A stretch of 63,025 nucleotides of DNA, the filler included, from Klebsormidium nitens (Eukaryota; Plantae; Klebsormidiophyceae): NCBI GenBank assembly GCA_000708835.1. It is 7 parts of 7 records of this genome, joined end to end, with 100 filler letters (N's around TTAATTAATTAA, not from the genome) between each part and the next. Parts side by side here need not be neighbours in the genome. Positions count along the whole stretch, not along the records: positions 44,421 to 54,779 come from DF238206.1; positions 54,880 to 61,472 come from DF238349.1; 5 more parts are not named here. The stretch is one strand, 5' to 3'. The position numbers and the translations under genes were made by a program. Shown in pieces: positions 10,582 to 55,000 of this stretch (its first letter is position 1; every line of letters starts with the position of its first letter). Below the pieces are notes generated by a model. It ran no database searches. It saw nothing but the letters and a program-made list of their open reading frames with translations, and was not told where the DNA came from.

Positions 10582-12576
10582 CGAAAAAGCGTGGATGCCA
10601 GCGAAGCCCTTTTGTTGTGGACGGGGGAGCAGTGGAGCTGGCACCACAGACAGACGTTCATTCAAGCCGCCATGCATGTGAGAGTGGATATGCGATGGTC
10701 ACCTTGATCCGAAGGCATCGGCAGCGGTCGTACAAGAGAGGCACATGCTAAGGAAAGGTGCGTCAGCAGCATTGTGGACTTCCATGGAGCTTGTTGATGT
10801 CCTTGAAGATTGCAGCAAGGACCGGCTACGTAGATGCAGCTGGTTGTAAATAGCTGCCCGGTGAGACACGGCGGCCTGCGCGGCAAGTTTGCAATGACGC
10901 TTCCGGCACCACATGGTGCATATACGTTACTTCAGTCACATGCATATAAAATATCCAAACGGTCGATCGTTTAGTAAGCGCACCGGCCCTCGCGGTGGTC
11001 ATGTGTTATTGTTGCGCGGCGGTGGCGGCCCGCGGATACGGTTGCAGCTGCGTGCATAGTCGGTCCGACAATGCATGTTGGCAACGCATAATCATATATA
11101 CTAGCTAGCGGCACTCAGTCGCCGGGCGTTGTCATGCACTTGGACGTTCTGCATTTGTGAATAATTTATAGCGCATGCATGCAGCGCGGCACTGAGGCGC
11201 GGCTGCATGCACCAGGTGCAACCGCGGCCCTGCAAATGCGCCAATTAATTCGAGTACATAGCTGTCATGATTCATGAAAGGTGCACATGCACTGATGCAG
11301 CATGTGCACATATGCCAGCTAGCTTCAATTAATTACCGTTCGTATAATCATTAGAATTACTATAAACTCAATGTCGGACTTAGTCACATGCAGTCGATCA
11401 TATGTGCACTGAACGGCCGTCATGCGGCCGGACAAAGAGCGACGGTAACTCGCGAGGCTTAAGCGACCCGCGCTCGATCCTATTTGATCATGCAACAATG
11501 ATTGATGAATGGCAATCCGTTATAACAATAACAATAACAATTGCAATAACAATATCAATATGCACAGTGGTTGTTGGCTAAACCAACTCAAAGTCGCATG
11601 TGAGTGCCACAGCACCTCAAATGTCACTCCTCACTGCTATGCCTCGCTCCAGCAATCGTGAACAAATCAACGCGACTAACGAAACCAGACAACGCCAGAG
11701 GCCTCGCACCTAGCGTGCTCTGAACCGCACGAGCCGATCGGTTCGATGAACGGCTCTGGCCTGGCTGCGCTGTAGACTCACTGAGATGCGCTGACGGTAA
11801 TAGCGCAGCAGACGAGAAGCCTCGTCTCCAACCTGACTCTCATCAGCAACTCTCAGAGCTGCTGCGCGCTGGGCGCACATATGGAGGAGCCGGTCGAACG
11901 GACCGCCAAAACAGCCAAAGGTCTCTATCCGTTGAGGCGTTACTTCAAATATTGCATCTTCTATACCAGGAGCCGGCGGCTTCATGCACATCAAGAGTAC
12001 TCTCGGATTTCTGCATTGACGTTCCAATTGATCGGTAGATGTCCTTAGCTGATGCGATTAACCAAAACCGTACGTTTACACTGAAAAGGGATGCGAGATA
12101 GACAGTGACTCGATCCTTTGAAATGATCTTCAATGATCGATTAAACGAGTCTCAATCATGTGTAGCAGTATGCTTAGCCGCCGTTTGTGTCCTATGTGCT
12201 AACCTATCAATTGGACCTGTTCTTCTAACCCGTCCGAATCCTACCTGGTGCCTGCAACCTGAACGAGCCTACACCCACCAACACTACCTGGCGCCCCATG
12301 CGAGCCAGCCGCTTGTACCACCCTAGCTTCGATGAGTGAGCCATGTCACCGCGCCTCCATCTGTCGAATGTGACCTGCCTCAGTGTTGTGGAAATTCCTT
12401 AGGTTGTAGGGGCCATCGTTGGATTCGGCCTGCGCGTCCAAGAGCTATCCAATCAGCCACAAGTGCACTAGATAGTTTTGCTGTCGGCTTTCACTCTAAA
12501 CTTAGAAGAAACTTCCAAAAAGCGAGAAGTTTACACCGGTAGAAGAAGTGGCCCATTGGTTTTTAAAAGAACATAC

Positions 12577-15500
12577 CTCGAGAAGCTCGTCTTCTAGCTG
12601 TCGCCTTGCACTGCTTTGTCTTGGTCGCCGATCATGCGTGACTGTCCGTAACTTCCCCTCCTGCACACGAACGTGAGGCCATGTGAGACACTGTGCCGCT
12701 TACAAAGAGAGGAACTACTAGTCTTGGCAACAGAGGAGGCCGCTTACAAAGAAAGAAACTACTAATCTTGGCAACAGAGCCTCCTCAAAATAACGAGGGA
12801 AGGAGACCCCTGGATGCTAGAACTCATGGTTGAGGGCAGTTGTGCTCTCGAATCTGCAAGCGCTTCGTAGGGCGTGCTGAACACCGCGTTTCTTGAGATG
12901 CCTCCAGGTCTGCTCTCTTCGAGAACCCTTCAAATTTCAGTGTATGCCAACTGCCAGCGGCCCCCAATGTCTGCTGCACTTGGCGCACCTTGGTCCCGTA
13001 GACGAGCCCCCCCCCCACTTGCGGGTGGAATGCTGCGACGTTGATCTCGTCCTCGGCGCTGGGCAGCACGCGCACGAGGCCCATGTCCGCGACGCGGTAC
13101 ACCTCTAGGATGGTGTACACCGGGATGATGCCCGCGCCGTCCGTCACCAGGCTGCGCAGCAGCGTGTTGTGCCGCCGCCCGTACGCCAGCAAAATGTGCT
13201 GCGACGTCGGCGAGAACTGTAGGCCACCACGCAAGATGCCACATGTCAGGAATGTTCAAGCAGGCTGCCGGAATGCTGATCGAGAGAGGCCGGCTGACAA
13301 ACACCACGATTAACACATGCTTCTTACCTGATTTGTTCCTGAGAAGAAGCACAGCGGTGTCAAACGAAGTTGTGCGCCGGCTGCTGGCAAAAGCATACTT
13401 GCAGGGCTGACTTCAGACTTCCGTTGTTTGATAGGTCAGTGCACACGATTGGAGCCCAGAACTGCTCGTTGCCAGCGGCTGTCTCACCTGTATGGAGGTG
13501 AGGCAGTGCGCTGCGCGGACGGTCCTGGACGCGAGCACCTCCCCGAAGGTGCCCTCCTCCAGGCTGTAGAGCCGCAGCTCGTACACCACCGAGTTGGCCT
13601 GCAGCGGCTGCGGCGGGGAGTCCGGCTGCAGGGGGGGCGGGCTGGGGAACTGCGCCGGATGGCCGCCAAACGAGTGCAGAGCGCCCCCATTGAGCGCGCG
13701 CAGGGTCTGCGTGAAGGCGTCCTCCTGGTCGGGGGGCGAGCGGCAGGCCACGCACGCAGCCAGGAAGCGGCCGCAAGGAGAGAAGTGGGCGCCCATCTCA
13801 CTGCACAGGGGCGACCCGCGGGGTGACCGAGATGCCGGGCGAAGGAGGGAAGGAAGCCCAATGGTGCCCCACCTTGCCTCCAACCATGACGTGGGAATGA
13901 GGAGGTAAGAAAGCGGAGCAAACTTTCTTTATATGAATTGCAAACGAGAATCTTATGCAAGTACTTATGAAAAGTATGTGTAAGTGAATTCTTCATGACA
14001 GTTGCGCTTTTCTCTCAAACCGACTCAATACAAAGTGCCTTCCAAAGGGGGGGTAGCTTGTGAAGGAAGCTTACCTGCATAACACTGCGTGTGGAATGGT
14101 CAAGCGGCACTTTTCCGGGTCGAGCAGCGCTGTCGGCCTGTTGATGTCGTGGGGCCACACCCGCAGCTTCACTGTACACGGCAGCTCCGCAGCGGCCGCA
14201 GCAGCCAGCGCGGCGCTCGCAGCGGCTTCGGCGGCAGGGCCCATGTCCTGTGCGGAGAACAGGAATGGCTAAGCACCGGTGTGGGCTGGCACGCGGACAG
14301 CAATTGACCTGAAGCTGCAGCTTGAGGAATGGCGAAGGGATGCAGCAGCAGATTCACAAGCATACTACTCCAGTGTAATATGCAAAGATACATGTGGGTG
14401 ACCGATGGTCGTCAAACCTAACAAGCCAACTTCAAACAGTGCACGTCAGCGGCTCTGCGCCTGTACCTGGAATGGTCTTGGCAGCTGGTTCAGGTGCCCC
14501 CCCGCCATCCCGCTTGCATGGCCCATCCCGGCTGCTGCGGCCCCCATCATGCCGGCCCCTGCCTGTGCCGCAGCCCGTGCAGCCGCCATTGCCGCTGCCA
14601 TGGCGACTGACGCCACGGACAGGGCCTGCTGCCCGCCCTGCGCCACGTGCTGTATGTGGTTGGGCCCTGCTGCGGGCAGCGCCGGCGCCTGGCCCCGCAG
14701 GCCGGCTGCTGGCTCCTGGCCCAGGCGCGCCCAGCCGCCCCAGAACGGGAGGTCCATCTGCTGCAGGGGGGGGATGCCCAGTGCGGGCAGCTGCTGCGTG
14801 AAGGGGTATCCCAGGGCCACGTTGGCCTCGGGATGCGAGCCGGCCGGGTGGGTCTGCGCAGGGCCAACACGGGTGGTAGAACTCGGGGCAACATTGAGAT
14901 AGCTCAGCGGGGGAGGTGGGGACACAACACTGGCCAGATCGATGGCCATGCTCTCGGTGGTGTCAGAAGGGTTGCGCTCCAGGCCCCCACTGTCAGTCCG
15001 CGCGAGTACGGTGCTTTGCGAAGCAGAGGCAGCCCCTGAGAAGGACAGCGCACGCGCAACGCCGCCCGTGCTGAGGGGCGCCACCGCAGCCTCCGGTCGC
15101 TGCAGAATGAGACAGCACCGAAGACAGACTTAGCAACAGATTGCACAAGCATTCTTTCACAGTGACTTATAATCAGAAGGTTGCAGCACGATGCACAGCT
15201 CAAGGTCAGAAAGTCATTTAGGAACGTACCCAATTCTCCTACTCATAGAGCAGTGTCATTAGCATCTCTCAGCTGCTGAATGGGCAGTGCCCCCAGCACC
15301 AAGAGCAGCCCCGCCATACCTGCAACCACCGGTCACCCTCTGCTGGTCGGGGAGACACGTCCATCTGCGCGGGCCCTTCTGCTTCGCTCATCCGGCTTGA
15401 CGGTCTCTCCCCACTCCGCTCCAGGGGCGGGCTATTCACAGCCCTCTGCCCACTCGTGGCTGCCCAGGGCCTTGGCAGGAAGCCAGCTGCGCCCGACGGT

Positions 15501-18217
15501 CCCGCCGGCCCCCCTCTTTGCGGCTGCTCATGGGACTGGGCTGGATGGTGGGAATGCAGGTTACCAAACAGGCCGGGGGAAGGGCTTCTGAAGCCAAAGG
15601 GGAGGGGATTTGCCGGGTTGCCGAAACCGAAACCTGCGCCAACTCCTTGCTGTTGCCCCTGCCGATTTTGCTGTTGACTCTCAAAGCTCCAAAAATCGTT
15701 CCAAGGCATGCCAGGTACCGGACCAGCAGGTGCTGGGAGCGGCACGTTACTGCCAGTCGGGGGCCACGCAGGGTTCTGCCCTATTTGGCCAGGGTTCGCA
15801 GCGGGGTTTGAGAAGACATTGGGTCCAGCATGAGGGGTGAAAACAGGGGGGCGGGAAGGGGCGCCAGCTGCCATTGCAGACAGAGTGGCGGGCGTGTATG
15901 CCATGGTGGTAGGGGGGGGGTTGTTGTAGCTGCGGGCAGTGGCAGTGGCGGGGGGGCAGTCGTTAGAGTCAAGATCATTGACTTCAGCAGTGAGGAGCAA
16001 GGGTGCCCCATGGGGGTGGAAGTGGACGGCCCGCAGGGAGCGCCGGGTACGCAAGACGATGGCGGGGGAGGCAGCCTCGCCCTCCGTGTTGTACTGCCAC
16101 ATGTACAGCTTGTGGCCCGAAGCTACGGCCAGAAGGTCGCCCGAGGCATGGAAAGCAAGGGAGGCAATGGGCCGCACTGCACACGAACACGCCAGCACGT
16201 CACAAAAGTTCTGAAGGGAAGGCAGAAGGCTCAGTGGTTTGACCAACACAGCTGCCTGGGTTGACCAATCCTTGCAAGTTCCATACACAAGGGCAAACCT
16301 TGCAAGTTTGTAATCTAATGGAAGAACATGCAGGGGAAAAATGGTCAAAACAGACTGAATGAGACCTGAAACCCTGGCTGGCAACCTATGAATACTGGTT
16401 ACACCAACCAGCTGGCCAACCAAGAACGGAAGGTCACAACAAAACACTGCAACCTTGGATAGAAAGAAACAGCATAGCAGAAAAAGCAAATCGCAGCATC
16501 CTCCAAATACCGCAACTGAATAATTTAAGGAAAATCGCAGAGCCCGAAGCAGATCTCGTCTTAGGAACGTTAGGAGTCTGTTCAAGCCATGAAGACTTGT
16601 AAAAGCTTCAGAAACATCCTGTCGGCCTACACCATGTGCACAGGTGCTTGCTCAAAAGTCTTTCCGCTTGCTCAAAAATGACTTCACCACAGGGAGCAGC
16701 AGGGATATACTCACAGAAGTCATGAGAGATATGACAGACACCAGTTCGTGTATTCCAAAGCCTGACCAGATGGTCCAGGCTGCCGCTGACCAGCATTTCT
16801 GGCTGGAAGGGGTGAAAGCGCACCTGCAAGCAGGCGGGGTCAGTGAGCAGCAACGGGCAGGGAGAGGGCGGGGAAAGCGTACTTACAGAAGTCGAACTTC
16901 TGGATGCATTCTGAGGTCGTGGCATTCCAGAGGCGGACTTCGTGATCCAGACTACCACTGGCAATCACGTGGCGGACGCGGGAGTGAAAGCGGACCTGGA
17001 AATGGGACGCGTGAGGGGGTGGGTGAGGACTGTGTCTTTCAGACAAACGGCGGAGTGGGAGCACAACGTGAGATCAGGGAAGCAACATGACACTCAAAAC
17101 CAGTGCTCCACACTGGTGGAGGGCCCGTAATGGTGCTGAGACAAGAAAAGGTGAGCAAGATCTGGTTGAAGAACAACGCAGCCCTCGCATGGACATGACC
17201 GTTTTCGCTTGTCGACAGGGTGTATATGATAATCTGTACTACCATGTAGACAGCAAACCCAAGGATGTGACACGTGTGATGTGTGTTGAAGTGTTTGGAT
17301 AGAGGGCTGTGACAGCCGTGATTTAACTGTGCCCCAGGATGCTGTACTCACCACCCAAGGCGTGCGTCTGTGTCCGCTGAACACTTTGACGCACTTGCCA
17401 GTTTGACAATTGATGATTTTCACTGTGTGGTCCCCACTGCAAACAGCAGGGCAGAGCATGAGCCTCCAGGAAAAGGCGAAATGCTGGCTTGTCAATGTTG
17501 CCAGCTGCGGGCAAACAGGTCGGAGCGCAGCTCTGGTACATAACCAGAAACATAGGGTCTTACATAACAACCTGCAAATTGGTGATCTGCGCATGCACGA
17601 GCAGGCAACACTCACTGTGTTGATGCCAGGGTCTCTCCATCCAAGCTGAAAGCTGCCGCTATAGTGGAGCGAGGGGCTGGATGCAGACTTGTGTACTTGG
17701 CGCTGCAATGCCTCAAAGAGTCGGCCTCCACCCTTCAGGAGGAGGAAACATGTCAAGATGTTTTCAAGTATAGCAAGCTAGTGCCTCAAACAATGATCCG
17801 CGAGCAATCACAGCAATCAGCGAGCAATCACAGCAATCAAGTTTCACCGGGTGTCCCAATCCTCCATTCATGACTGATGTCTATGCTGGACAAGAAAATA
17901 TGCATCAACACAATTGGACATGCGACCAGCATCATTGGCTCAGACAGGTACACACGAGTGTTGATTCCTCACCATTCGCCCAGTGCCTGCTTCACATTTG
18001 CGGGACGGGCATCTCCAGCGGCTCCTTCGACGCCCGCCGTGTCAGCACCCCAAAGACGCTTCTTGGGCCGCCGCAATGAAGGACTGACTTCACGAAAAGC
18101 TAGGAGCCGGGTGATATTGCTAGTATCGGCCCTGCAAAGCACAGACAAGCCAGAGTGACTTGGAAATAAGCACTTGCAGATCGGCAAAGTCTCAATTGTA
18201 CTTATCTGTTTTTGCAT
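12577..18217 (-). CDS. AMBRA1/DCAF-like plant WD40 protein. Exons ~18217(or 18131)-17973, 17732-17616, 17436-17352, [16995-16887 OR 16823-16715], 16176-15320, 15099-14467, 14247-14075, 13800-13488, 13216-12989, 12660-12577. The exact start and last exon are uncertain (possible terminal exon ~12050-11710).
   Basis: The spliced product gives WVEADSLRHCSAKY..RSTIAAAFS.DG.TLASTHGDHTVKII..GHRRTPWVVRFH, LRTRRSLRAVHFHPHGAPLLLTAEV, AELPCTVKLRVW, HAVLCSEMGAHFSPCGRFLAACVAC and DEINVAAFHP..GGGLVYGTKEGKLR. These are hallmark segments of the plant AMBRA1-like WD40 family. Confidence 0.88.
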
Positions 18218-21200
18218 CACACGGATAATATCAAAGGGGAGAGTTGCAAAATTTCCATCCTCTCCCAGCTGTTAGGTTGTTGAAATGCTGAAAGCTCCAG
18301 AAGACACAACCGCAGAGTCTCTTTCCAACCATGATTTCAACCGAAAAACAATGAAGTTCAGACCATCCGAGGAACCAGCACCCCATGTGCAACCCTTCAC
18401 AAAAAAGGGTTAAGGCATCTGACGGTGTTGCCATCCCTCAAAGACTTCATCTGACCAAGTCCTTCTCCATTAAATCCTCTGGTACTTTTTCAAGACGATA
18501 TAAATACCGCATCCATGAAAAGACATTGATACCTTTGATGTATGGGACGCCAGTATGACGCACAGCTAGTTTGGCAACACCTAATAGGGCAGATGCAACC
18601 AATTGGATGAAGTCACTGTAATGTGGCAAGTTGCATACACTGAAAGTCCCAACGCCATCAATTCCTCCAATCCTACGTCGCTTTCTCCAGATGACAAGGT
18701 AGTTGTGACTTCAGCACAGAAACAGTGATGAAGTTTATTCGTTCCAATCTGACCACAGGGCGTGCAGCCTAGGGTTTGCTTCAGAATCCGCAGCGTAAGG
18801 TGCAACCAAAGAGCAATATGCGACATACCTGGCCTGGGTCTTGGAGCTCCTCTTCCAGTCTCTAAAAGCACTGACACCAGTCCCACACTGCATGCTATCT
18901 CCATCCATCGGCCCCTCCATTGTCCCTTCTCGACTGTTGAAAGCACTGCCAGAGAGGCCCTTGATTACATGTACTTATCAGATTTCATCATCCCAGGTTT
19001 GAGGATTTCAAAGACAGCCTATGCCAATCGGAGCCTCTGGCCAGTACAGCTTTCCCCGTTACAATGTTCTCGCCAACCCTCTATTTGAGAAACGCAGACT
19101 GCCATACAGATGTATCGCTCATAAAGATATGCAACTTGCTGCTTGGCATCCACAGAGACAAAAAGGATTGAGTGTACCCTGGGACCGCCTTCTTGCAGGA
19201 TAAAAGGGGCAAAGCCCTACAGATTGCAAACAGCATTACAGATAGTCTTGCCGATCAATCGCCGGCGTGCCAGCCCTGCCTATTGTCCTTCCTTCACACA
19301 CAACCTATGTGGGGGCTTGCATCGAATCCTGCAGGGCGCAATAGCGCAACACTGACACGTTCAGACACACCCGGGAACCAAACCGCCACAGCAGGTGTCC
19401 AACTACCTACCTGCCCTGCCGCCAGGTGAAACAACCATCGGTCCATCAACTTTCTATAGCGACCTTCGCGAGATATGGCGGCAGACTGCGTGACTGGCAG
19501 TTGCAACTTCCTACGTACGTTTCGGCCAAGTCTCCCTGCCACCTGGACAATCTTGGTGTGACACAAACCGGCCACTATACAGTCTATAAGCGACCGGCTC
19601 CTTCCAAATTTTGGTGATCGAAGTGGATCGAAGTCACGGGGACCGAAGTTCGCACCGCAAACTGCAGCTCGACCGGGCGTCCACCGGGGCTCTGTGCTCT
19701 ACCGTGCGGTGTACCAGACTCCAGTCCAATCAGTGGATGAAAAAGATCGCGCCAAACCTCCGAGCCCAAGCTGAGGACACACGTGATGGTCGCCAGGCCC
19801 GCTTGCGAATCTAGCCGCTGACAAGGGGTCGGAAGGATCCCCCGGATGGGTCGTATTGATCCCGCCGCTTGCTGTGTTTGCAAATATTGCTATCCAGATC
19901 CATTGTTGTGTCAAGGCATCGGGAGTCGGTGTCCCCTCCCGGCCACGGCTCAACTTGCTAGGTAGTCAACTAGGGTCCAAGCTGATTTTCCCAGTTAGCC
20001 GCGCCTAGTATCAATTATAAGGTTAACTTTCCTTCCATATCGGCGTCCTGCAAACGTCGCCACTTGGAAGCATCGAGGGGTCTGAAAGTAATAACCAGTC
20101 CGTAAATCGCACATAAATCTAACTTCTGACCAATAATTTGAAACTGAAGCTTGAAAGAAGTTGAAACCATTGGAGTTTAACATCATCACATTCAACGGCT
20201 GTAAGCAATTACGTTTGATGGTGTTTGTTTCGTGCTCCCCGGAGCCCAATGCTTCAAGCTTCAATATGCTTCAAGGAGTAGGGACGTATGTCAGTAATTC
20301 CAATGAAAGCTGGTCACTTGAACGGTCCGAGGCCATGCTTCAAAGCTCACATAGTTGCGGCCGACCGGCCCCTAGTGTGTGCATCGTTGGGGCACACGTA
20401 CATGTACTTTGAATGCACGATGCGCGACCACACAATTGACTTCTTAAATTCAAGGCTTGGCCTCTACATTCCGTGTCAACTCACAATTAACTAGGAATTT
20501 TACATGGCCCGCTCTGAAGGCCTAGCATGCATCACCTGGCATGCCGCACGGTTGGCGCAGTGTATTCCCTCTTTTTGAGCCCATTGGTATAAAAATGGCT
20601 TTGATTTGAGAGCTAACTACCGGCCACGCTGCGCGGCTACCGTCGTAGAAAATCTACATGACCGTCCGACACTAGTTTTATAGTGCATTAGTGCACGTAC
20701 CGACGGTAACGTAGTGCACGGCCCCTTATTACAGTATACGGTAGCATAGCCAATGGCATAGTTCACTAGACCATGAACATCAATATATAGTCTATAATAC
20801 GATGTTGTAGTGCAAGTAGCCTGCGACGGCAAACAATTCATGCATCATTAGTCGGACCGGGCAGACTTGAAGTTCATATATAGGGCCGGATATCAGCTGA
20901 CTGCAATATATAACCCGAGGGTTATGGCAAAACTGCCATATGCCCGCTAGCTGCGAATGTAAGGTAACCGTACCCGAGCTATGTTACTAATCGCATATAG
21001 CCGGCATAACTTGTTGTACGCCTGCCAGCGTATCCAGTGCTGACCGGAAGCTTCAGCCATAACTTTCAAACATGAGGCATGCCCACTGTGATGATCGAGT
21101 TAGGCGAGACATCCTAGCCTGACCGTTCGTACGCACAAGCGTCAAGGTAGTGCGCGACCGAACCGGCTACATGTAAACAGCGTTTCTTCCTATTGGATAG

Positions 21201-44320: not shown

Positions 44321-44421
44321 NNNNNNNNNNNNNNNNNNNNNNNNNNNNNNNNNNNNNNNNNNNNTTAATTAATTAANNNNNNNNNNNNNNNNNNNNNNNN
44401 NNNNNNNNNNNNNNNNNNNNC

Positions 44422-46515
44422 ACACGAAACGCAAAGGACCATGAGGGTCGGATTGCGGATGCGATGATGAAATTACTTAAAAATAGTGGCTTGGACGGAA
44501 ACGTTCGTTTCAGTGGAAAAGTTTCGCATCGTGGCCCAATGGGTTCATTGTATTCCTTTGTCTGTAACGGCCCACGAAGGTGCATCAATGGACATTGCCA
44601 CAATGGTTCAAACAATTTCACGTTGATAAAACGAGGTTGGGTTGTGCTTTATCGATGCTTTGGATCCGAATGTTCAGAGAAGCCGCTTGTAGAAGTTGGA
44701 AGTCTCAGCCTGACGGACTCACTGCTAGATGCAAATCCTATAAAGTTGCATCCAACATTCGACCATTCGGTTTTTCCTGATAATCGAAGATCTTTATCCG
44801 AGGTTGAACACCAATTGTATGTGGATATCGTCAAACGCAACATTATGCAACGCTATCGAGGGATGGCTGCTATTTTTAGTGCAATCTACGCCGTTGATGG
44901 ACGAATTCTTGCCGAAGGAAAGAATTTCAGATACTGGAACGGACGACGCTGGATTCTGGATGGATCCTTTCATGTACAGTCGGTCTTTTCAAGCCACATC
45001 GCGCGAATCTTGAAATGGTATGCGAATCTACGACTTGCGGCATTCAAGCATGAGATTTGGAAGCTGGCGAAGGAATCGACGGAATGGGAATGTGTATCAG
45101 AAGCTTCGGAATACACTCTTCCAGATTGGGCAACCAAACCGCGGAGCGAAGAAGAAAAGCGCACATGCCGCCGAGCGTGGGAGCTAGTCTCGGCCAACTT
45201 ACCATTTCCTTCAAAAGGTGACTCTGCATGTCAGCTTATAGACCTAACGCGGGGCTCTGAAGTGCGCGTCTGTCTTGAACACGTTCTCAATTCGCTGCAG
45301 ATTCAGGAGGATCTAGATGCTTTGATGGACCTCGCCAATCCAAATCTGTTTGCATGTGCCAATGGAGTGTTGGACACAACAACTGGACTTCTGCTTATGC
45401 CCCATCCTGCACACTTGTGCTCGCGAGCTTCGAAGGTAGCTTTTCGCGGAATGCCTAACTCCGAGTCCCGATTTGCTTCATTCTTGCTAGCGTGCTTCAA
45501 TAATGACAAAGAAGTGCTTGATTGGTACCAACTGTATCTCGGTTACTGCATGACAGCTGATACAAGCGAACAGATATTTCTCGTCAAGCAAGGAGAGGGG
45601 AGTAATGGTAAAACTCTCACGAAAATAGCTTCTTTCGAGATCTTTGGATCGTATGCAGTCGTCATGGACAAGGATCTCATCATTGAAGCGGGGGGCAAGC
45701 GGTCTCCTGGTTCAGCTTCATCACATCTGATAGCATTGAAGGGAGCGAGGTTAGCAGAATCCGATGAGTCAAGCAAAAAGTCTGTCCTTAACGAAGCAAC
45801 AATCAAGGAGTTGTCTGGAGGCGGCTCCATCACGGCAAGAGAGCTTCAAGGCAAGCAAGAGACCTTTATGGTGTCCCATAAGGCCATTCTGAACACCAAT
45901 TACAAGCCCATTATGGAAAATACATCGTTTAGTCTCATCCGCCGTATGGCCCTCCTTCCAATGACAGTGATTTTCAAGTCGGCCGACGATGTTGATCCGC
46001 GGAAAACCAGAGAAAAGCCAAAAGATCCTACCTTGGAAGCTTACTTGAAGTCCGACGAAGGTCGAGAGGATGGACTTTCATGGATTGCAGCCGGGGCAAA
46101 GCGCTACTTTGAGTTGAAACGAGCGAATCCGAGCGCTCTTGTCCTAGAGAAACGACCAAAGGCTATGAAAGACGCCTTGAAGGCGTATGTCAACGACAAC
46201 GATGTTGGCAAACGTTTCATTGAGGAGTGTTGCGAGTTTGAAGAGATGCAAGAGGGTGTACGTGCGAAGTGGCACCTAGCTCTAGGAAAAAGGCTTGGTG
46301 ATGCTTTTCGAGCTTGGATGAAGGAGGAGGAGATCTCTAGTTCTCTGACCGCTCAAGCCCTGAAAAAACGCATTCTCCTCTATGCCGACGGAGCCAACTA
46401 TCGACTCGAAGACGGTCGTTTTACGGATAGATCTGTACAAGATAGAGGGCAATTCAAGGGTCTTAGTGGAGTGCGGTTGAAACCTGATTTTATGCATGAA
46501 ACGGCAGATGGATGA
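44422..46515 (+). CDS. Virus/plasmid-like primase-helicase: PrimPol/UL52-type Zn finger + D5_N + SF3 helicase (P4/D5 family). The reading frame is open back to the gap, so the N-terminus (possible AEP primase domain) is missing.
   Basis: Intronless, at least 683 aa. Zn finger C-INGHC-H-NGSNN..YRC-FGSE-C, D5_N FACANGVLDTTTG, Walker A GEGSNGKT, Walker B LAESDE, motif C ILNTN, Arg finger IRRM. Confidence 0.88.
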   Translation, partial: TRNAKDHEGRIADAMMKLLKNSGLDGNVRFSGKVSHRGPMGSLYSFVCNGPRRCINGHCHNGSNNFTLIKRGWVVLYRCFGSECSEKPLVEVGSLSLTDSLLDANPIKLHPTFDHSVFPDNRRSLSEVEHQLYVDIVKRNIMQRYRGMAAIFSAIYAVDGRILAEGKNFRYWNGRRWILDGSFHVQSVFSSHIARILKWYANLRLAAFKHEIWKLAKESTEWECVSEASEYTLPDWATKPRSEEEKRTCRRAWELVSANLPFPSKGDSACQLIDLTRGSEVRVCLEHVLNSLQIQEDLDALMDLANPNLFACANGVLDTTTGLLLMPHPAHLCSRASKVAFRGMPNSESRFASFLLACFNNDKEVLDWYQLYLGYCMTADTSEQIFLVKQGEGSNGKTLTKIASFEIFGSYAVVMDKDLIIEAGGKRSPGSASSHLIALKGARLAESDESSKKSVLNEATIKELSGGGSITARELQGKQETFMVSHKAILNTNYKPIMENTSFSLIRRMALLPMTVIFKSADDVDPRKTREKPKDPTLEAYLKSDEGREDGLSWIAAGAKRYFELKRANPSALVLEKRPKAMKDALKAYVNDNDVGKRFIEECCEFEEMQEGVRAKWHLALGKRLGDAFRAWMKEEEISSSLTAQALKKRILLYADGANYRLEDGRFTDRSVQDRGQFKGLSGVRLKPDFMHETADG

Positions 46516-46599
46516 TTGGGCAACGACGATACTTTTTGTGCACATTACATGGCTCTCGTGTTGCTTCATTTGGATTGGTTCAATGACAACCATATGGAT

Positions 46600-46981
46600 G
46601 CAGACTAAAAGACCAGAAGACCAGAATTCTAGATCTTTTTCTTTTCATTTTCAAAGAATAACTCACTGATGTAAGGCCTCTCTGTGAAATAAAAAAGATT
46701 GAGAATTTCGGGCTTCTGGTCTTTTGGTTTGAAATCCTATTCTGCCTCAACGACATAGTTCAGTGACAGCCATTTGATCGCAGACTAGAAGACTAGAATA
46801 CGAGGTTTCGAAGACTAGAATTCTAGATCAGTGATAAATATATGATTGCAGACCAAAAGACCAGAAGACCAGAATTCTAGATCTTTTTCATTTCATTTTT
46901 CAATGAATAACCCAATGATATAGTGCCTCTCTGTAGAATAAAAAAGGTTGAGAATCTCGGGCTTCTGGTCTTTTGGTCTGC
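46600..46981. repeat. Two complete (46600-46732, 46848-46981) and one partial (46780-46829) ~134-bp fold-back units with GAC(C/T)AGAA iterons and an AT-rich centre
   Basis: Unit 2 has a perfect 20-bp terminal inverted repeat, GCAGACCAAAAGACCAGAAG / CTTCTGGTCTTTTGGTCTGC. Unit 1 is a near-identical direct copy. Confidence 0.9.
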
Positions 46982-49205
46982 CGCTCTCCTGCGCCAACAT
47001 GTTGATCATCAAATATGTGTGATACGATGAGAGAGTTTGCAACGTCTCATACAAGCATGAGCTACTACCACATGCTAATGTATGGGATCATAAAAAATGA
47101 TTCAATCTCAGTGGCACTGTTTTAGTGTAATAGGCAATATCGAACAAAAGGTGTCCACCAGCGTACGTTACCCGCTACTCTCATCTTAGCGTCATCTACC
47201 CGCACGAGTTCTGAATTTCGGCCACTCACCAAACTGGCTAGAATAATCATGAAAGCTTCGAGCCCAGAGTACCAGCCTAGCGTCTTAAACCTGACGAGGA
47301 AAGAATTGCAACTCTCGACAGCCGAAGTGTTGACCCAACGCACTACGTCATAGTAATCCGGGTTGAATGTTGGTCCGCACTTGTGTCCCTCCGCTCCAGT
47401 TCGCTGAAAGTGGAACCTGTACGCAACATTGCGCAATTATTTGATTGGTTCAAGAAAAAACGCGTTGATCGAGTTGATCATACGGTCAACATCTTCACGA
47501 TGTCAAGCAATCCGACGTGCACGACCAGTCCGGGTGCCGGACGGCAACCACACATGGCTCGTCTAGCTTTCTGCAGATTGAACGGAAAATACAAAACGAG
47601 CAGAACCTAGACACCTTCAGCAGAGATACTAGACGACGGTCAAACGATACTACGCAACTTGCCACTTTCTGCACGGTACTTGCCAGACCTGCCATGCCCC
47701 AACAAATGTTGCAGAATGTGAATTCGTGACGTTTAAAGAGATATAGAGACAATTGCTGGCAACACGGAAGAAGTGAAGAAGAGCTTGTCTCCACCTCACC
47801 TGTCTACCAGGAATCGGACGTCCGCAAAAAATGCCGGCTCGCGTCGCATGCAGTAGGCTCGCAGCTTGCAAGCATTGTCGTAGAAGACAAAGCGAGGCAG
47901 ATTGTGTCGATGTAGTCGTGTGTACAGCACGGCGAATGGATCGCGCGGCGACTCTCCTCGAAGCATGGCATGGAAACCATAAATTACTCGGTGAGGACAG
48001 CAGAACACGAAGCCCCCTTTGGTATGTCTCTGGAGACGCTGCGCGGACTTCGACTTGCTGAGAGTCGCGACCTCAGCGTCAAACTCCCCCACTGTGAGCC
48101 CCCCTCTACATCGATGCTCTTCAGCCCGTTCGATGGATCTGCCTAGCTCGTCTTCAAAAGGTCTGTACTGCGGCAGAGGGCGCTTCTGTTCCCAGCCAAG
48201 CAGAGGATAGCAGCCAAGCAGGCGCTGTTCTTTGCAGAAGGGATGATCGAGAGGTAGATTGGGAGGGATGCTTCCACCTGCTTCTAGGCCTAGCCGCCCG
48301 TTCCAAAGCGCTGTCTCTGGTACTGAGAGCGGGTAGACCCCAGCTTCTGGTTGTGAGAGCTGCTCAACCGCTGGTAGCAAAGCATTTGCCCGCGCCTCCC
48401 AAAATGCAAAAGCTTGCTGGCGGTCCGCGGACCATGCGTGCGGCCGCTCTACTCTGTCTCGCGTTGACCAAACGCAGATGTCTAGCCCCTCGATGGCAGA
48501 GAGCGCGATCCCAGCGCGTCCCACCCCTAGGCCGACCGTTCCGCGGCCAAATAGAGTGAGCCGATATAGATGGTGGAGGGTTGGGAGGAAGAAGGTGGGG
48601 AAGGTGGACCCGTAGTGATCTAACAATCGGCGCAAGATGGGAGAATGCTCAGCCAGAACGGCACGGTCGTCTAGGTTCGCCACACCTCCCAAGAGAAGCT
48701 TTCTGACCACCGCTAGAGCACTGCCATGCTGGATGACATTGCTATCATCTGAGACGGACTTCGGCGTGCCGAGGCTGTAAAGAAGCTCCGACCATCTTCC
48801 AGGGCAACGGGGGGGGCTCTGTCCGGGAATGCTCAGCAGAGACTCTGCCTTGATCCCTTCCATGAGAACCAGCAACGCCCGGTTTTTGGTCCGAATCAAG
48901 CCGGTCTGCTCGAGTAGAAGACGTCGCCGCCAATGAAGGAGAACAGGGTCCGCATCCGGGTCGTTGGGATCTGAAATGAACTCGGTGACGACTTGTACGT
49001 CCGCTCGATCAAGCGCAATCTGCGGTGAAAGCAGCAAAGTACTCAGAGCAGTGCAAACCTCCTCCGGAGCTGTCTAGGTTATGCTTTGATTCAAGTTCTG
49101 CAAAAGCTGGACAAGTCGGTATGCGCTCAATCCTACCGCCGGGGAAGACACGAGACGAGCAAAAGCTAGAGACTTTCAGCGCGGGCGCCACTCCCACACA
49201 GCTTG

Positions 49206-50085
49206 GTTAGATTCGGGTTTGGCAGATTGAAGACATATACAAATCGTGCAGAACCTGGACGCCTCTGGTGCCGGATGCCAACCTCGNNNNNNNNNNNNNN
49301 NNNNNNNNNNNNNNNNNNNNNNNNNNNNNNNNNNNNNNNNNNNNNNNNNNNNNNNNNNNNNNNNNNNNNNNNNNNNNNNNNNNNNNNNNNNNNNNNNNNN
49401 NNNNNNNNNNNNNNNNNNNNNNNNNNNNNNNNNNNNNNNNNNNNNNNNNNNNNNNNNNNNNNNNNNNNNNNNNNNNNNNNNNNNNNNNNNNNNNNNNNNN
49501 NNNNNNNNNNNNNNNNNNNNNNNNNNNNNNNNNNNNNNNNNNNNNNNNNNNNNNNNNNNNNNNNNNNNNNNNNNNNNNNNNNNNNNNNNNNNNNNNNNNN
49601 NNNNNNNNNNNNNNNNNNNNNNNNNNNNNNNNNNNNNNNNNNNNNNNNNNNNNNNNNNNNNNNNNNNNNNNNNNNNNNNNNNNNNNNNNNNNNNNNNNNN
49701 NNNNNNNNNNNNNNNNNNNNNNNNNNNNNNNNNNNNNNNNNNNNNNNNNNNNNNNNNNNNNNNNNNNNNNNNNNNNNNNNNNNNNNNNNNNNNNNNNNNN
49801 NNNNNNNNNNNNNNNNNNNNNNNNNNNNNNNNNNNNNNNNNNNNNNNNNNNNNNNNNNNNNNNNNNNNNNNNNNNNNNNNNNNNNNNNNNNNNNNNNNNN
49901 NNNNNNNNNNNNNNNNNNNNNNNNNNNNNNNNNGATTGAAAGCATATACAAATCGTGCAGAACCTGGACGCCTCTGGTGCCGGATGCCAACCTCGTCCAG
50001 GTTTTGCAGATTGAAAGCATATACAAATCGTGCAGAACCTGGACGCCTCTGGTGCCGGATGCCAACCTCGTCCAGGTTTTGCAAA
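49206..50085. repeat. 75-bp minisatellite (50-bp palindromic core + 25-bp linker) inside a transposase intron, mostly collapsed into a gap
   Basis: GATTGAAAGCATATAC recurs at 49934 and 50009 (period 75), and the same unit lies left of the gap (49225-49286). The core ends are inverted: GTCCAGGTTTTGCA / TGCAGAACCTGGAC. Confidence 0.9.
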
Positions 50086-51599
50086 ACCTAGACAACTCTC
50101 GTGTCGGATGCCATCTTCAAAGGGCTTGTCTAGAATCAGCAGATTCAACCATGTGAGAACTCACCATCAGCTCGTCGAACTCATTGCTGCTCAGGGGTGC
50201 CCCAAGATCAGGGTCTTTTGGATGATGCCGACTGAACCGAGCCAGCAACGTGCGCAACTCCGGTTGGTGCAGAAGACGCCGTTTTGGGCCGCAACCGTCC
50301 AGCCCAGCTGCGCAAAAATTCACGCCCGGCTGCATCACCTTCTCGACGTTCACTCCCGCAGCATCTTGAGTCGGAGCCGTAAACGGCCGCAGATGCGCCG
50401 CGCTCGTGCCAGACAATCCCCCTTTTTGGCGCCCACCGTCCGCGCATGCGAGGCCCGCAATCCCGTCGCAGAGCAGAACCGCGGGGTGAGGCCCGCAGAT
50501 GCTGCAGNNNNNNNNNNNNNNNNNNNNNNNNNNNNNNNNNNNNNNNNNNNNNNNNNNNNNNNNNNNNNNNNNNNNNNNNNNNNNNNNNNNNNNNNNNNNN
50601 NNNNNNNNNNNNNNNNNNNNNNNNNNNNNNNNNNNNNNNNNNNNNNNNNNNNNNNNNNNNNNNNNNNNNNNNNNNNNNNNNNNNNNNNNNNNNNNNNNNN
50701 NNNNNNNNNNNNNNNNNNNNNNNNNNNNNNNNNNNNNNNNNNNNNNNNNNNNNNNNNNNNNNNNNNNNNNNNNNNNNNNNNNNNNNNNNNNNNNNNNNNN
50801 NNNNNNNNNNNNNNNNNNNNNNNNNNNNNNNNNNNNNNNNNNNNNNNNNNNNNNNNNNNNNNNNNNNNNNNNNNNNNNNNNNNNNNNNNNNNNNNNNNNN
50901 NNNNNNNNNNNNNNNNNNNNNNNNNNNNNNNNNNNNNNNNNNNNNNNNNNNNNNNNNNNNNNNNNNNNNNNNNNNNNNNNNNNNNNNACTCGCCTTCCGC
51001 CAGGTCTCGCTGGACAGGGGTTTGGCACCCGGCGAGTACAATCGGCGGACGGCGTTTTTGGCCTCTATAAGAGCGCCGTAGGCGGAGCCAGAGCCTTGCA
51101 CGCATCGGAGCAGCAGCTGGCACGATGCTTGTGTGACGATGACGCTCCTCGTCCACACGTACAAGCCCAGAGTTTCTCCATTGAAGTGGACCGTGTGCTT
51201 CTCCGGACAATTGCAGCAATATATGCGGATCTGCACCTGCACACAGGAAAAATGGACTCGAAATGGTCTCATGCCGTCAAGAAAGGTGAGAAGAGTTGCG
51301 TGATAGGGAGGAGTTTGCCTTTGAGTTTTGTTTAGACCGTTCTCGTATTTGCAAACAGTTCGAATCCTGTCCAGCATTTGCAGTCTAGATTTACGCATAA
51401 AATCTGCAAAACCTGGACAGCCCCACCAACGTGTTTGACAAGAAGAGATTGCCAACAAAAGCTTGGGATAACTTGCGCATGCTCATGCTCTACATAGATT
51501 TATCTAGTTGTCCAACTTCTATGGTCTGCAAAAATTGAGCACAACCCAGTCAATCCTGACGCCACTGAGAGATGGATGCCCACCAAAAAGAGCTTGCTG

Positions 51600-52034
51600 A
51601 AGGAGCAAAATCTAGAGAGCTCCAGCGCGGATGTCGATCGCACACCGACTCGTCTAGCTTTTGCAGAATCGAAGCTATAGAAAGGGTGTGGAATCTAGAC
51701 AGCTGTGGTGCCCGGATGCAAACCACACAGACCATGTCCAGATTTTGCAGATTGAGAGCATATACAAAACGTGCAGAACCTGGACAGCTCCTGCGCGGAG
51801 GAAAATTGGACATTCATTTGTCTAGCTTTTGCAGAATCAAGACATATACAAAGTGTGCAGAATCTAGACAGTACCTGAAAACGACAGCGGCAACCCGGTG
51901 ATGTTATGCATAAAATCTATCGCGCTCAATGAATGTAGAATCTGAAGAGTCTCGATACTGTGCTTGAGAAGCACCGTCTAGCTGTCTAGCTTCTGCGTCC
52001 CTTTGATTACGCCTGATATTTGCAGAACCTAGAC
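51600..52034. repeat. Array of ~50-bp palindromic repeats separated by 34-35-nt diverged spacers (51652-51700, 51736-51785, 51820-51869, 51984-52034)
   Basis: Consensus GTC(T/C)AG.TTTTGCAGA..CATATACAAA..GTGCAGAA(T/C)CT(A/G)GAC. Spacers are 51701-51735 (35 nt) and 51786-51819 (34 nt). Confidence 0.85.
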
Positions 52035-55000
52035 GAATGCAACGTGGCAACAATCCCAGCATGCACTCACCTCCTGAGACCAGTCCAATGAGTAGATGTG
52101 CGACGCCTGCACCAAGCTCGACCAGCCCGTCCCGCAAGGTGGCGGCTCCTTCGGGCAAGGTGCGCACAAGCACTCCATCCTGCTCAGCTCATCAAAATCG
52201 CGCGCCGTCAGCTGGCTAACTCTCACCGGCTGCTTCAGCAGGGTGACGGGAGGGTCGTGAACGGCCTCGGGAGCCGTCTGTTGGGCGCACTAACTTTGGA
52301 GTTTCCACCTGAACGCCCTCTGCACTCATGGGCATGACGACGGCAATACGTGCTGGCTCTGCGTGGAGGCACGCCAACGAAGGGCAGGAGCAACTCTCAC
52401 AGACGCGGACGCAACCCCTCCCATGCCCCCCACCAATGCACCCAGCCCCCTCATTGTTGGCCACATCTCCACGCTCACCACCCCCCATTTGAGCGGCCCA
52501 AAAGGCTTTAGACCTCCGTTTCACCCCTCGCTGTGCGGACGCCCCATCCTCTACCGTCTCCTCTCGCGGACGCTTCCCCGGTGCGCTACTGTTTGCGGAA
52601 GTACAGCACTGACCTTCGCAGGGCTGCTTGTCAAGGCTCACCCCCCCCAAACAGCGATGGATGCTGTTGGCAAAAGCAAGTGCACACCGCGTCATGCCGC
52701 TCTCCGGCGACAAGACCGAGGAGATAACGCTCCTCATCTGAGAGGGCCTCTAGATCCTCTCCGCACGCCTTGCTTGCTTGACATCCCTCACCGGCTTGCG
52801 TTTGCGTGCAAGCTGCCTCCTCCTTGCCAGCCGCCACCTCTCTCTTCTTTCGCTGCAGCCACACTCTAGCCCGTTCCAGCTGCGTTTCTGTGAAGAGGCA
52901 CCCCTCCAATTTGCTTACCCCCTCTCTTCTCTCGAGCACTCTTTTCACCTCCAAAAGATGTCTGCAGTCCGCAGTTTTGCTGCAGCCTCCGCGTCTTCCC
53001 TCGCAGTACCATTGGAAGTCAGCCTCCGCGTCGAAGTGCACCATCGTTCTTTCGGGGGAAGGCGAACTCGTGTTCCAAAAAACCCCAAACACTCTCTGGC
53101 CCAGGGTGCTGCACGGCGCCTCCACCACCCGCGGCCCCTTTCGGAATGATAAGTGGCTTGATTGCTAACGCTCCTGGAGGGCTTGCAATGCCAGCTTGTG
53201 GACGCAAGCTGCGCCAAAGCTCAAACAGCTGCGATCGCACGTGCAACTCGGGTTCCCCATCGTGTCCCAGTTCACCGTCTCGAGCAACGCCGTGCTTTTG
53301 CTGGGCCGTCCCAGCGGCTTTGGCCTGGCAGCATTGTGGTTCCACGTGGTCATCAAAAAGACGGGGCTGCAGCCCTCCGTCTCTCCAGTGCTATAGATGG
53401 AGCAGTAGCCGGTCTTGATGTTGGCCAGGAACCGTGCAGCTTGAGCAACGAGTGTGAGCTGCCCGTTTGCATCCCGGCCTTCTTCTTCTCGTCCGCAATC
53501 CTACAAAAAAGGTTTGAATACCATTGGTTAGCCAACTGCCTCAAATATCCAAGATTCAAGTGTGCCCGACGATACTAGGCTGTTTAGATTCAGAACTTGG
53601 GGGAAAGCTTTGAAATTCTCGGAACCGTAATCGAAGCTGCAAAGGCTCTTTCTGTCCACCTTCTGCAAGTCGCAAACACATGATCGCCGCCTTTGTCTAG
53701 ATTCTGCATATTTCTTAAATGTGTTGACGTCTGCAAAACCTAGACACATACGCCAGCTAGTTCATTGGGTCGGCCCGAGGGGCCTAAGGTCGGGGAACAG
53801 CTCAAGCAGTTGAATCCGTGGGGTGGGCCTGGGCAAGGGCATGAGCGAGACCCCACCTAGAGTGAGCATCCTCAATGTTATCCGCACAGTGTTGAAGTCA
53901 CTGACCCACATCAAACCTTGGAGAACATCAAATCATAAGATCCAGAGGTTGTATATTTATGTACAACCTCCATTTGAGGGAGGGGTGGCCAGAATCAACT
54001 GCCAGTTATGATTCAACGACTTCTTAAGTAGCGAGAACAACTCACTGAAAAATCAACTCACTTTTTGTTGGACCGTCCGCGGGATCTCTCCCGCTTGGCG
54101 GCCTCTATTCAGAGCACTTTCGGCTGCAGATTTGCTGCGCTTCCCGCCAGCTGCCTCCCTGCTCTTGGCATCTAATGTCTGCAGCCGAATGACCTCGTCT
54201 CCGGCCAAAATCTTCTGCTGGCGCCATGAGCCGGTGGGCTCTGCAGTGCGGTCGAACCAGACCTCCGGTGGACCCACCCATCCACTGCGGGTGATACGCC
54301 AACACTCGTTTTTGTGATTGAGACTTTTCCAGTCCAACGCTCCACGCAAGCGAGACACAGAGGTTGGTTCTTGCCACTGCCTTTTGCCTTGTTAGAGATA
54401 GCAAAGCCGCTGAGATTCTTCTGCTGCGATTTTCTGAAGGAGATTCGGCAGACTCCGTTTTTCGAGCTCAAGAGGGACTGCTTGCATATTGCACACTTGA
54501 AAGCGGTGGAGTTGACTACCAGGAGCCTTGGGTCTATGATGAATCTCCCCGAGGAGACCTGAGTCCACGAAGTCGGGCAGAACCCGTCACCCGGCGACCT
54601 AACCCCTGTCTGAGTCATGGCCGAGCACCTTAGGCTACTGTACGGGTTTCGCCGGTCGGACTTCCTTTGACTGACTTCTAGCTTATGATCGAGTCGAGAT
54701 GAGGAGTTTTGATGGTCGCATTCGCCTTATATACCGTCGGAATATCCCAGGGAAATGACCTCTTACAGGCAATATTTTTNNNNNNNNNNNNNNNNNNNNN
54801 NNNNNNNNNNNNNNNNNNNNNNNTTAATTAATTAANNNNNNNNNNNNNNNNNNNNNNNNNNNNNNNNNNNNNNNNNNNNAGGCCCCATGATGCGCTATAA
54901 TACATTGTCCGGCTGAGCAAGTTGCGTAATCGCATGTGACGTTCATAATGGACGGCCTACTTTTCAATTTTGTGACGCTTTGTCAGAGACCTCGACTCAA

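Follow-up and report, generated by a model that had tools for sequence, protein, structure and literature searches.

Palindromic repeats in the introns of a KDZ-like transposase pseudogene of Klebsormidium nitens look like ordinary unstable DNA inherited in a transposon lineage

The window, as the whole 63,025-nucleotide stretch of Klebsormidium nitens DNA analysed here is called, carries on its minus strand (47122-54618) a KDZ-like transposase pseudogene recognised by homology to syntenic loci. Five exons, each searched separately, were delimited against those loci, with the splice sites read from the sequence: exons 1 and 2 at ~54618-54062 and 53500-52071, exon 3 at 51236-50988 and, beyond an assembly gap, at 50507-50164, and exons 4 and 5 at 49019-47800 and 47416-47122. 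The exon blocks are 73-81% identical to the syntenic locus L001, to L018-L020 and to the K. nitens locus L002. The DNA is algal, its best protein matches being from Klebsormidium nitens, with ~70% identity; exact searches with the two long reading frames gave no match, and two word searches reached 83-84% identity at most. In searches against Pfam, KDZ scored below the cut-off both in the window (E = 0.0026) and in the K. nitens homologue (E = 4e-5), and there were sub-threshold similarities to CxC4 (E = 0.057) and SWIM (E = 0.085), the order SWIM, CxC4, KDZ being the expected one. These similarities point to a distant KDZ-like transposase as the host gene.

As a pseudogene, the copy in the window has a single in-frame stop codon near 53180 and at least three frameshifts (~54271-54295, near 52645 and 52226-52288). 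The assembly gap in exon 3 (50508-50987) lies outside the introns and the repeat system. Aligned to the intact reading frame of L018, its two flanks cover residues 1-85 and 100-214, which puts the missing sequence at ~42 nt (14 codons); the frame would be broken by the nominal 480 N.

The intron intervals were set by homology to the syntenic copies of the same element, and the placement of the repeats was judged against those exon blocks. The original prediction had described a palindromic repeat that fills all four visible introns of this gene and is absent from its exons. The distribution is confirmed with the exon blocks from the syntenic loci, and every copy listed, from 47561-47612 to 53695-53745, was recovered at its position; "fills" is apt for intron 3 (~92% of the visible bases) and intron 2 (~69%), but not for introns 1 and 4, which hold one unit each (16% and 27%). 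All four introns are on the minus strand. Intron 1 (53501-54061) holds an inverted unit with its palindrome at 53695-53745. Intron 2 (51237-52070) contains palindromes at 51369-51418, 51652-51700, 51736-51785, 51820-51869 and 51984-52034, the last inverted, and one-armed relics at 51492-51549 and 51604-51617. The contents of intron 3 (49020-50163) are an inverted unit (49072-49112), a one-armed relic (~49148-49171), a diverged unit (49206-49260), an assembly gap (49287-49933), perfect 75-bp units (49934-50083) with one palindrome ending at 49969 and another at 49995-50044, a loop-less palindrome of 24 bp (50070-50093) and a second one-armed relic (50128-50148), which adjoins the 5' splice site. 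The single unit of intron 4 (47417-47799) spans ~47528-47632 and consists of the palindrome 47561-47612 and homologous linkers; the 5' splice site of this intron, GTGAGG, supplies the stop codon that terminates the unspliced exon 4 reading frame.

With one mismatch at most, the half-site TGCARAANCTRGAC was matched 21 times against 0.08 matches expected from 100 shuffles, and all 21 fall within the four intron intervals of the transposase gene. The repeat unit measures ~75-85 bp and is made up of an imperfect palindrome of 50 bp, with the arms GTCYAGNTTTTGCAGA and TGCARAAYCTRGAC around an A/T-rich loop of ~18 nt, and a CpG-rich linker of 25-35 nt. Since the linkers are homologous from unit to unit and from intron to intron, inverted copies included, the repeated unit is the palindrome together with its linker. 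Both orientations occur, as predicted, and in the units c2, c15 and c16 the inversion takes in the linkers as well. No Rfam family matched the repeat at E <= 1, a two-arm pattern scan of viral contigs gave 0 matches, and the same scan of metagenome contigs gave 15 single matches, none of the 15 preceded by the left arm, as expected of chance.

Periodic arrays, the other element of the prediction, are real. At 49934-50083 (plus strand) two units of 50-bp palindrome and 25-nt linker form a tandem array that continues leftwards into the assembly gap, and TRF reports for it a period of 75, 2.0 copies and 100% identity; being identical, the units are taken to be recent. A third 75-bp unit lies at the left flank of the gap (49225-49286), in register with the others and 80% identical. 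The gap 49287-49933 is thus inside the 75-bp array and, with both flanks in one register, the missing length would be 13+75n nt. The position of this gap exactly within the array is consistent with a repeat that is hard to assemble; the host gene is a pseudogene, yet the array holds identical, recent units. A second array of four units, with a period of 83-85 bp, extends across 51.6-51.9 kb, and a 168-bp dimer occurs among the monomers of 75 and 84 bp.

Traces of rearrangement are seen in individual units. In the loop-less unit, the loop was removed by deletion between two TGCA microhomologies. Other units are mosaic: the c13 palindrome of intron 2 is 94% identical to the c6 palindrome of intron 3, while the c6 linker, unlike the c6 palindrome, is closest to the linker beside c1 in intron 4. 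The claim that the arms are better conserved than the linkers is borne out, the values being 76-83% for the arms against 50% for the loops and 38-43% for the linkers; CpG frequency is 5-7 per 100 nt in the linkers against 0.6-3 in the arms. The arms form 13 pairs, with 94.9% of the cells paired across 9 copies. A T opposite a G is common to 6 of the 9 copies, and this position is an inherited asymmetry.

Related copies of the element provide a view of the age of the repeat. Two of them have decayed copies at corresponding internal sites: a unit in intron 1 of L019 (7005-7046), significant to the repeat model, and two copies in intron 2 of L001 (8187-8240 and 8293-8356). A weaker left-arm relic directly follows the 5' splice site of intron 2 in L018 and L019, a weaker possible relic was seen by eye at the start of intron 3 in L001, and possible relics in intron 1 of L001 and L018, likewise seen by eye, were matched by neither the model nor the HMM. 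The right arms of the related copies are lost, with no compensating changes. In four copies whose introns are otherwise unalignable, 14-16 of the 16 positions of the left arm beside the 5' splice site of intron 2 are preserved. The presence of copies in introns 1 and 2 of the relatives, with the relic seen by eye in intron 3, indicates that the repeat unit was probably present before these element copies diverged. The repeat is absent from L020 and K. nitens L002, which are more distant copies. L001, L018, L020 and K. nitens L002 all have intron 3 at the same position as the window; as repeat-free copies share it, the repeat would have moved into pre-existing introns, which by this comparison predate it. 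The motif was found nowhere in ~70 kb of other DNA of the L001, L018 and L019 loci and a further 14 kb, and two extra loci reached via the primase gene showed no transposase introns and no motif. An empty-site comparison for the solitary unit of intron 4 was precluded, as the related introns do not align.

The explanation that we favour, with somewhat better than even confidence, is that we are dealing with a non-coding minisatellite, capable of forming hairpins, which belongs to a single lineage of a large KDZ-like DNA transposon and sits in its introns. On this view the sequence resembles ordinary unstable DNA inherited in that lineage, rather than anything CRISPR-like or clearly functional. 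The units stand head to tail at constant periods (75 and 83-85 bp, with the 168-bp dimer), and the unit in the window was multiplied by tandem duplication, whole units with their linkers being found also inverted and in other introns. The DNA hairpins have z-scores down to -5.8, and that they are as stable on one strand as on the other speaks for a palindrome at the level of DNA, as does the arm asymmetry common to 6 of the 9 copies. During replication the palindromes would be extruded as DNA hairpins and so lead to breakage, and repair from sister units could then cause units to expand in number or to invert, loops to be deleted and gene conversion to act around the palindrome. Such conversion may keep the arms more alike than the linkers, with CpG decay as an added source of linker erosion. 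The exons would be free of repeats because insertions into them would have been fatal to the element during its active period, and no function for the alga or for the element would be needed.

Some observations sit less easily with the minisatellite explanation. In arrays of equal age the arms are ~80% conserved against 50% for the low-CpG loops, a difference not expected from neutral decay alone; conversion as the account of arm conservation is our inference, and its tracts would be short. The retention of the left arm by the 5' splice site of intron 2 in four copies also speaks against it. The inverted and solitary units elsewhere require a dispersal step, which was not directly observed.

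A rival origin, which we hold to be unlikely, is a miniature non-autonomous transposon, MITE-like or REP-like, with the 16-nt arms as terminal inverted repeats for a transposase, perhaps the KDZ-like one, that inserted repeatedly and survived only in introns. The arms are the best conserved part of the repeat and pair as terminal inverted repeats should, the copies are in both orientations in four separate introns, a 94%-identical palindrome lies between differing linkers, and the copy at 50070-50093 runs arm to arm over 24 bp. However, none of the 10 aligned copies is bordered by a direct repeat that could be a target-site duplication, and their flanks are homologous linkers, so that the spreading unit is larger than the palindrome. 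The palindrome, at 50 bp, is also below the usual size of a MITE, and ~85 kb of non-intron DNA of related genomes contains no copies. Upstream of the transposase gene in the relatives, homology starts near ATACGTGG, the sole repeated motif seen there, which has no similarity to the palindrome arms; the true element termini, looked for upstream of the gene, were not located. The suggestion of a REP-like or MITE-type mini-element mobilised by the host transposase is therefore not upheld, in view of the lack of target-site duplications, the inclusion of the linker in the unit that moved and the dissimilarity of ATACGTGG and the arms.

We regard as quite improbable a functional cis-element, which could be a hairpin in the intronic RNA, covering up the 3'-splice-site-like TTTTGCAG of both arms or serving as a source of small RNAs, or else a palindrome to which the transposase or a host protein binds. 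The differential conservation of the arms and the recurrence of the motif at corresponding introns in a number of diverged copies would fit such a role, as would one covarying pair among the 13 (T-A in 5 copies, C-G in 3) and the ability of c14 and c15 to pair in the sense RNA as a long imperfect hairpin, weak at z = -2.3. Against it, a second candidate for a long inter-unit hairpin folds worse than its shuffles (z = +1.5), the hairpins are equally stable on both RNA strands, the stems of 13-19 bp with mismatches are short for Dicer substrates, the more distant L020 and K. nitens L002 do without the motif, and no Rfam family corresponds to it. Selective upkeep of an RNA stem, as originally proposed, is not supported, given the covariation of a single pair, the lack of a strand difference and the uncompensated loss of the right arms in the relatives. 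Nor is self-regulation of the element through the repeats, as the host gene copy is dead. An intronic miRNA or small-RNA hairpin precursor is disfavoured by stems shorter than the ~21 bp expected of one, the sparse covariation, the absence of strand bias and the Rfam result. A more specific form of the functional explanation, which we hold to be very doubtful, would make the palindromes a conserved cis-module of the transposon lineage, either a candidate array of SWIM/CxC binding sites in introns or hairpins that hide decoy 3' splice sites; the homogenisation of the arms would then reflect element-level selection, and the module would link the protein of the element with the splicing or chromatin state of its transposase gene.

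That introner-type elements created these introns is scarcely credible: several introns of one gene do share sequence, and the arms begin with GT and contain TTTTGCAG, but the repeats supply no splice sites, the real ones being found at varying distances beyond the palindromes, GTCYAG makes a poor 5' splice site next to the GTGAGT in actual use, and the position of intron 3 is common to the repeat-free L020 and K. nitens L002. A CRISPR identity was discarded, as the locus is spliced eukaryotic DNA and the spacers are homologous to each other, which, as the original prediction had reasoned, excludes CRISPR-type acquisition of foreign DNA.

If the minisatellite explanation is true, the repeat matters mainly for annotation: it accounts for the gap in the assembly of intron 3 and serves as a marker of a single sublineage within a KDZ-like transposon of streptophyte algae that has been little studied. 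Loop deletion, inversion and mosaic conversion also make it a small and clean case of repeat instability driven by palindromes. Should the arms turn out to be a target of the transposase or of RNA processing, the repeat would rank among the rare examples of DNA transposons that keep regulatory repeats within their own introns.

Subterminal repeat arrays are known from CACTA/En-Spm elements, and DNA transposons carry short tandem and inverted repeats and have given rise to minisatellites. The repeat described here resembles those of CACTA/En-Spm elements as a short motif, direct and inverted, inside a cut-and-paste transposon, in arrays that expand and contract and are inherited with the element; it differs in lying in the introns of the transposase gene instead of subterminally, and in a unit that holds a 50-bp palindrome, transposase binding being here a candidate property. 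With MITEs and foldback elements it shares a short, non-coding, hairpin-forming sequence with conserved inverted arms that is intronic and found in both orientations; unlike them, it shows no target-site duplications, measures only 50 bp, includes linkers in its unit, forms tandem arrays and is not seen outside its parent transposon in related genomes. Bacterial REP/BIME and CRISPR loci likewise have palindromic repeats at regular spacing that alternate with less conserved stretches, whereas the present repeats are in eukaryotic nuclear introns, with homologous spacers, no RAYT or cas genes and a period that arises from tandem duplication of repeat and linker. Introners and introner-like elements are comparable in having sequence common to several introns and a predicted secondary structure; the difference is that the repeats here supply no splice sites and are younger than the introns.

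The palindromic repeat, an imperfect palindrome of about 50 bp followed by a 25-35-nt linker, lies in the introns of a KDZ-like transposase pseudogene (47122..54618, minus strand), in which a 413-residue minus-strand reading frame (47799-49037) was about 70-83% identical to K. nitens, JGI and Logan proteins in a protein search. The DNA that contains it is eukaryotic and algal, not human; exact look-ups found nothing, and none of the matches was identical. Against L001, a syntenic metagenome locus, and four other loci, blastn resolved the gene into five conserved blocks with four unalignable intervals between them. Canonical splice sites at the edges of the conserved blocks were used to define the minus-strand exons E1 (to 54062), E2 (53500-52071), E3 (51236-50164, with a gap within), E4 (49019-47800) and E5 (47416-47122) and the introns 1 (53501-54061), 2 (51237-52070), 3 (49020-50163) and 4 (47417-47799); the exons were treated singly, by reference. 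SWIM, CxC4 and KDZ matches to Pfam occur in the expected order, all below threshold, and this support is consistent with the putative identity of the gene as a KDZ transposase. Intron 1 has two candidate donors (54032-54062), since its 5' splice-site string (AGTGAGTTG, gene strand) occurs twice at a spacing of 16 nt.

Judging by lesions called against the intact reading frames of the related loci L018 and L019, this transposase copy is degraded. The lesions, all on the minus strand, include a frameshift in exon 1 (54271-54295) and, in exon 2, an in-frame stop near 53180, a frameshift near 52645 in a run of C and another frameshift at 52226-52288. The stop, where a CGG codon of the relatives reads TAG, fits a double CpG deamination; the frameshift near 52645 may be a sequencing or assembly error. 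Aligned with the L018 frame, the flanks of the assembly gap at 50508-50987 inside exon 3 correspond to residues 1-85 and 100-214. This puts the missing sequence at about 42 nt, and the nominal length of 480 N would break the frame.

Every palindromic copy placed in this gene by the original prediction is present, and the feature is real and was correctly described. A covariance model (R1) built from an alignment of nine copies (A2) recovered all nine, together with a diverged unit at 49207-49263 and a 24-bp loop-less copy, and had no match in the exons, the primase gene or the intergenic region of the window. The 14-nt half-site, allowing at most one mismatch, has 21 occurrences where 0.08 would be expected, and all 21 are intronic, though introns make up only about one-quarter of the readable bases (44421-54779), which upholds the proposed restriction to introns. 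The further statement that the repeat fills every visible intron holds for introns 3 and 2, where matches to a full-unit HMM take up about 92% (visible part) and about 69%, respectively, and not for introns 4 (27%) and 1 (16%). Each palindrome arm carries TTTTGCAG (e.g. 51743-51750), which is close to the 3' splice sites used in the transposase gene, so that decoy acceptor sites are available on either strand of every unit.

The repeated unit exceeds the palindrome, the linkers being homologous across neighbouring units, across introns and in inverted copies; the spacers are thus not foreign acquisitions, as had been argued. The 84-bp array carries a 168-bp higher-order repeat, and tandem growth with identical units is seen inside the dead transposase gene. 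In the 75-bp array, the left flank of the gap at 49287-49933 reaches position 62 of the unit and the right flank begins at position 1; the two sides are therefore in register, with 13+75n nt missing for any number n of units. Relationships among the units are mosaic: the palindrome of copy c13 in intron 2 shares 94% identity with that of c6 in intron 3, c13 is only 75-80% like its own neighbours, and the linker of c6 is nearest to that beside c1 (intron 4). The 24-bp copy (50070-50093) is the remnant expected from a deletion between two TGCA microhomologies of one unit, a typical hairpin-loop deletion.

The claim that the arms are kept while the linkers drift was borne out, the mean pairwise identity being highest for the arms (76-83%), lower for the loop (50%) and lowest for the linkers (38-43%). 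Arm conservation is real. The linkers are rich in CpG (5-7 per 100 nt) and the arms nearly CpG-free, a difference that can account for some of the decay in the linkers and does not account for that in the loop. Selective maintenance of the stem was not supported: among the 13 arm pairs, seven are invariant and a single one covaries (five copies have T-A, three have C-G and in one the pair is broken), which is not impressive against control shuffles. A T opposite G at one arm position, common to six copies, is an inherited asymmetry and not maintained pairing.

Outside the window, R1 found three matches only in the 163 kb searched (the window, L001, K. nitens L002 and L018-L021), namely two in L001 (intron 2) and one in L019 (intron 1). 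Weak left-arm relics were detected by nhmmer in L018 and L019 where intron 2 begins. Possible relics were also seen by eye, in L001 within intron 1 and where intron 3 begins, and in L018 within intron 1. Right arms are mostly gone from the orthologous copies, through changes that are not compensatory. The repeat is absent from about 70 kb of other DNA of these loci and from 14 kb in two extra loci (L022 and L023). In the more distant L020 and L002, introns occur at exactly the same positions with no detectable repeat, making the repeat a secondary occupant of old introns. From these comparisons it appears ancestral to one element sublineage, decaying in some copies and amplified in that of the window.

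Most probably, the repeat reflects the ordinary dynamics of repeats within a transposon copy that is decaying. Its unit structure, tandem growth, unit inversion, mosaicism, loop deletion, array gap and descent with the element fit an unstable palindromic minisatellite. The palindromes would extrude as hairpins and break, and repair from sister units would yield both expansion and a palindrome-centred gene conversion, which could keep the arms more uniform than the linkers with no function needed. Two other readings, both less probable, draw on the real conservation of the arms, though each falls short in one or more direct tests. A cis-acting site, which would be a palindrome that binds a protein or an RNA hairpin that hides the TTTTGCAG strings, is opposed by the decay in relatives, the short stems and the lack of strand bias. 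As DNA, the majority of the single hairpins fold better than shuffles (z down to -5.8), with c2, c14 and c16 only marginally better and c12 no better (z = 0.06); the summed hairpin energy, reported as the same on both strands, is -176.5 kcal/mol on the plus and -163.9 kcal/mol on the gene-sense minus strand, and such equality points to a DNA-level palindrome, not a sense-RNA structure. A MITE-like mobile unit is opposed by the lack of target-site duplications, none having been found at any palindrome copy. An introner origin is contradicted by the identical intron position in the repeat-free L020 and L002.

The transposase gene lies tail-to-tail with a plus-strand gene (44464-46515), whose reading frame (44464-46512) matches Prim-Pol/D5_N primase-helicases of K. 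nitens, JGI and Logan at up to 84%. Counterparts occur in L001 (12142-15708), L018 (9177-11132), L020 (12604-15057) and L002 (11827-12898), separated from the transposase by about 0.6-1.5 kb in the first three; in L002 the annotated primase gene is about 9 kb off and a weaker primase-like DNA similarity adjoins the transposase gene. Together the two genes resemble a single large composite mobile element with its own replication protein. Between the convergent gene ends, a foldback of about 150 bp is present in two tandem copies with a period of about 249 bp (46580-46985). Its arms, of 45-56 nt, show 77-84% complementarity and are rich in AGACCAGA, and for one of them an alignment exists at the same place in L001 and L002. 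The foldback could be a bidirectional terminator or other transposon cis-element, and model search found no relation to the intronic palindrome. In L001 (5400), L018 (3207) and L019 (5699-5777), one to three copies of the motif ATACGTGG(C/T)GCA, a candidate subterminal repeat, lie upstream of the transposase start at a distance of about 230-350 bp; the window ends short of the matching region. L019 also has an insertion of about 9 kb after exon 4 (11098-20289) with a 1592-residue PHD/zf-CCHC reading frame, and an LTR-retrotransposon fragment upstream of the element.

No literature on such repeats in Klebsormidium or KDZ elements was found, and among the KDZ groups well characterised termini are available for Zisupton only (PMC12730594). 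The likeness of the repeat to CRISPR is one of periodicity only. In shape it resembles foldback and MITE elements, from which it differs in having no target duplications, and in behaviour it is like the internal or subterminal repeat arrays of DNA transposons and the minisatellites derived from them.
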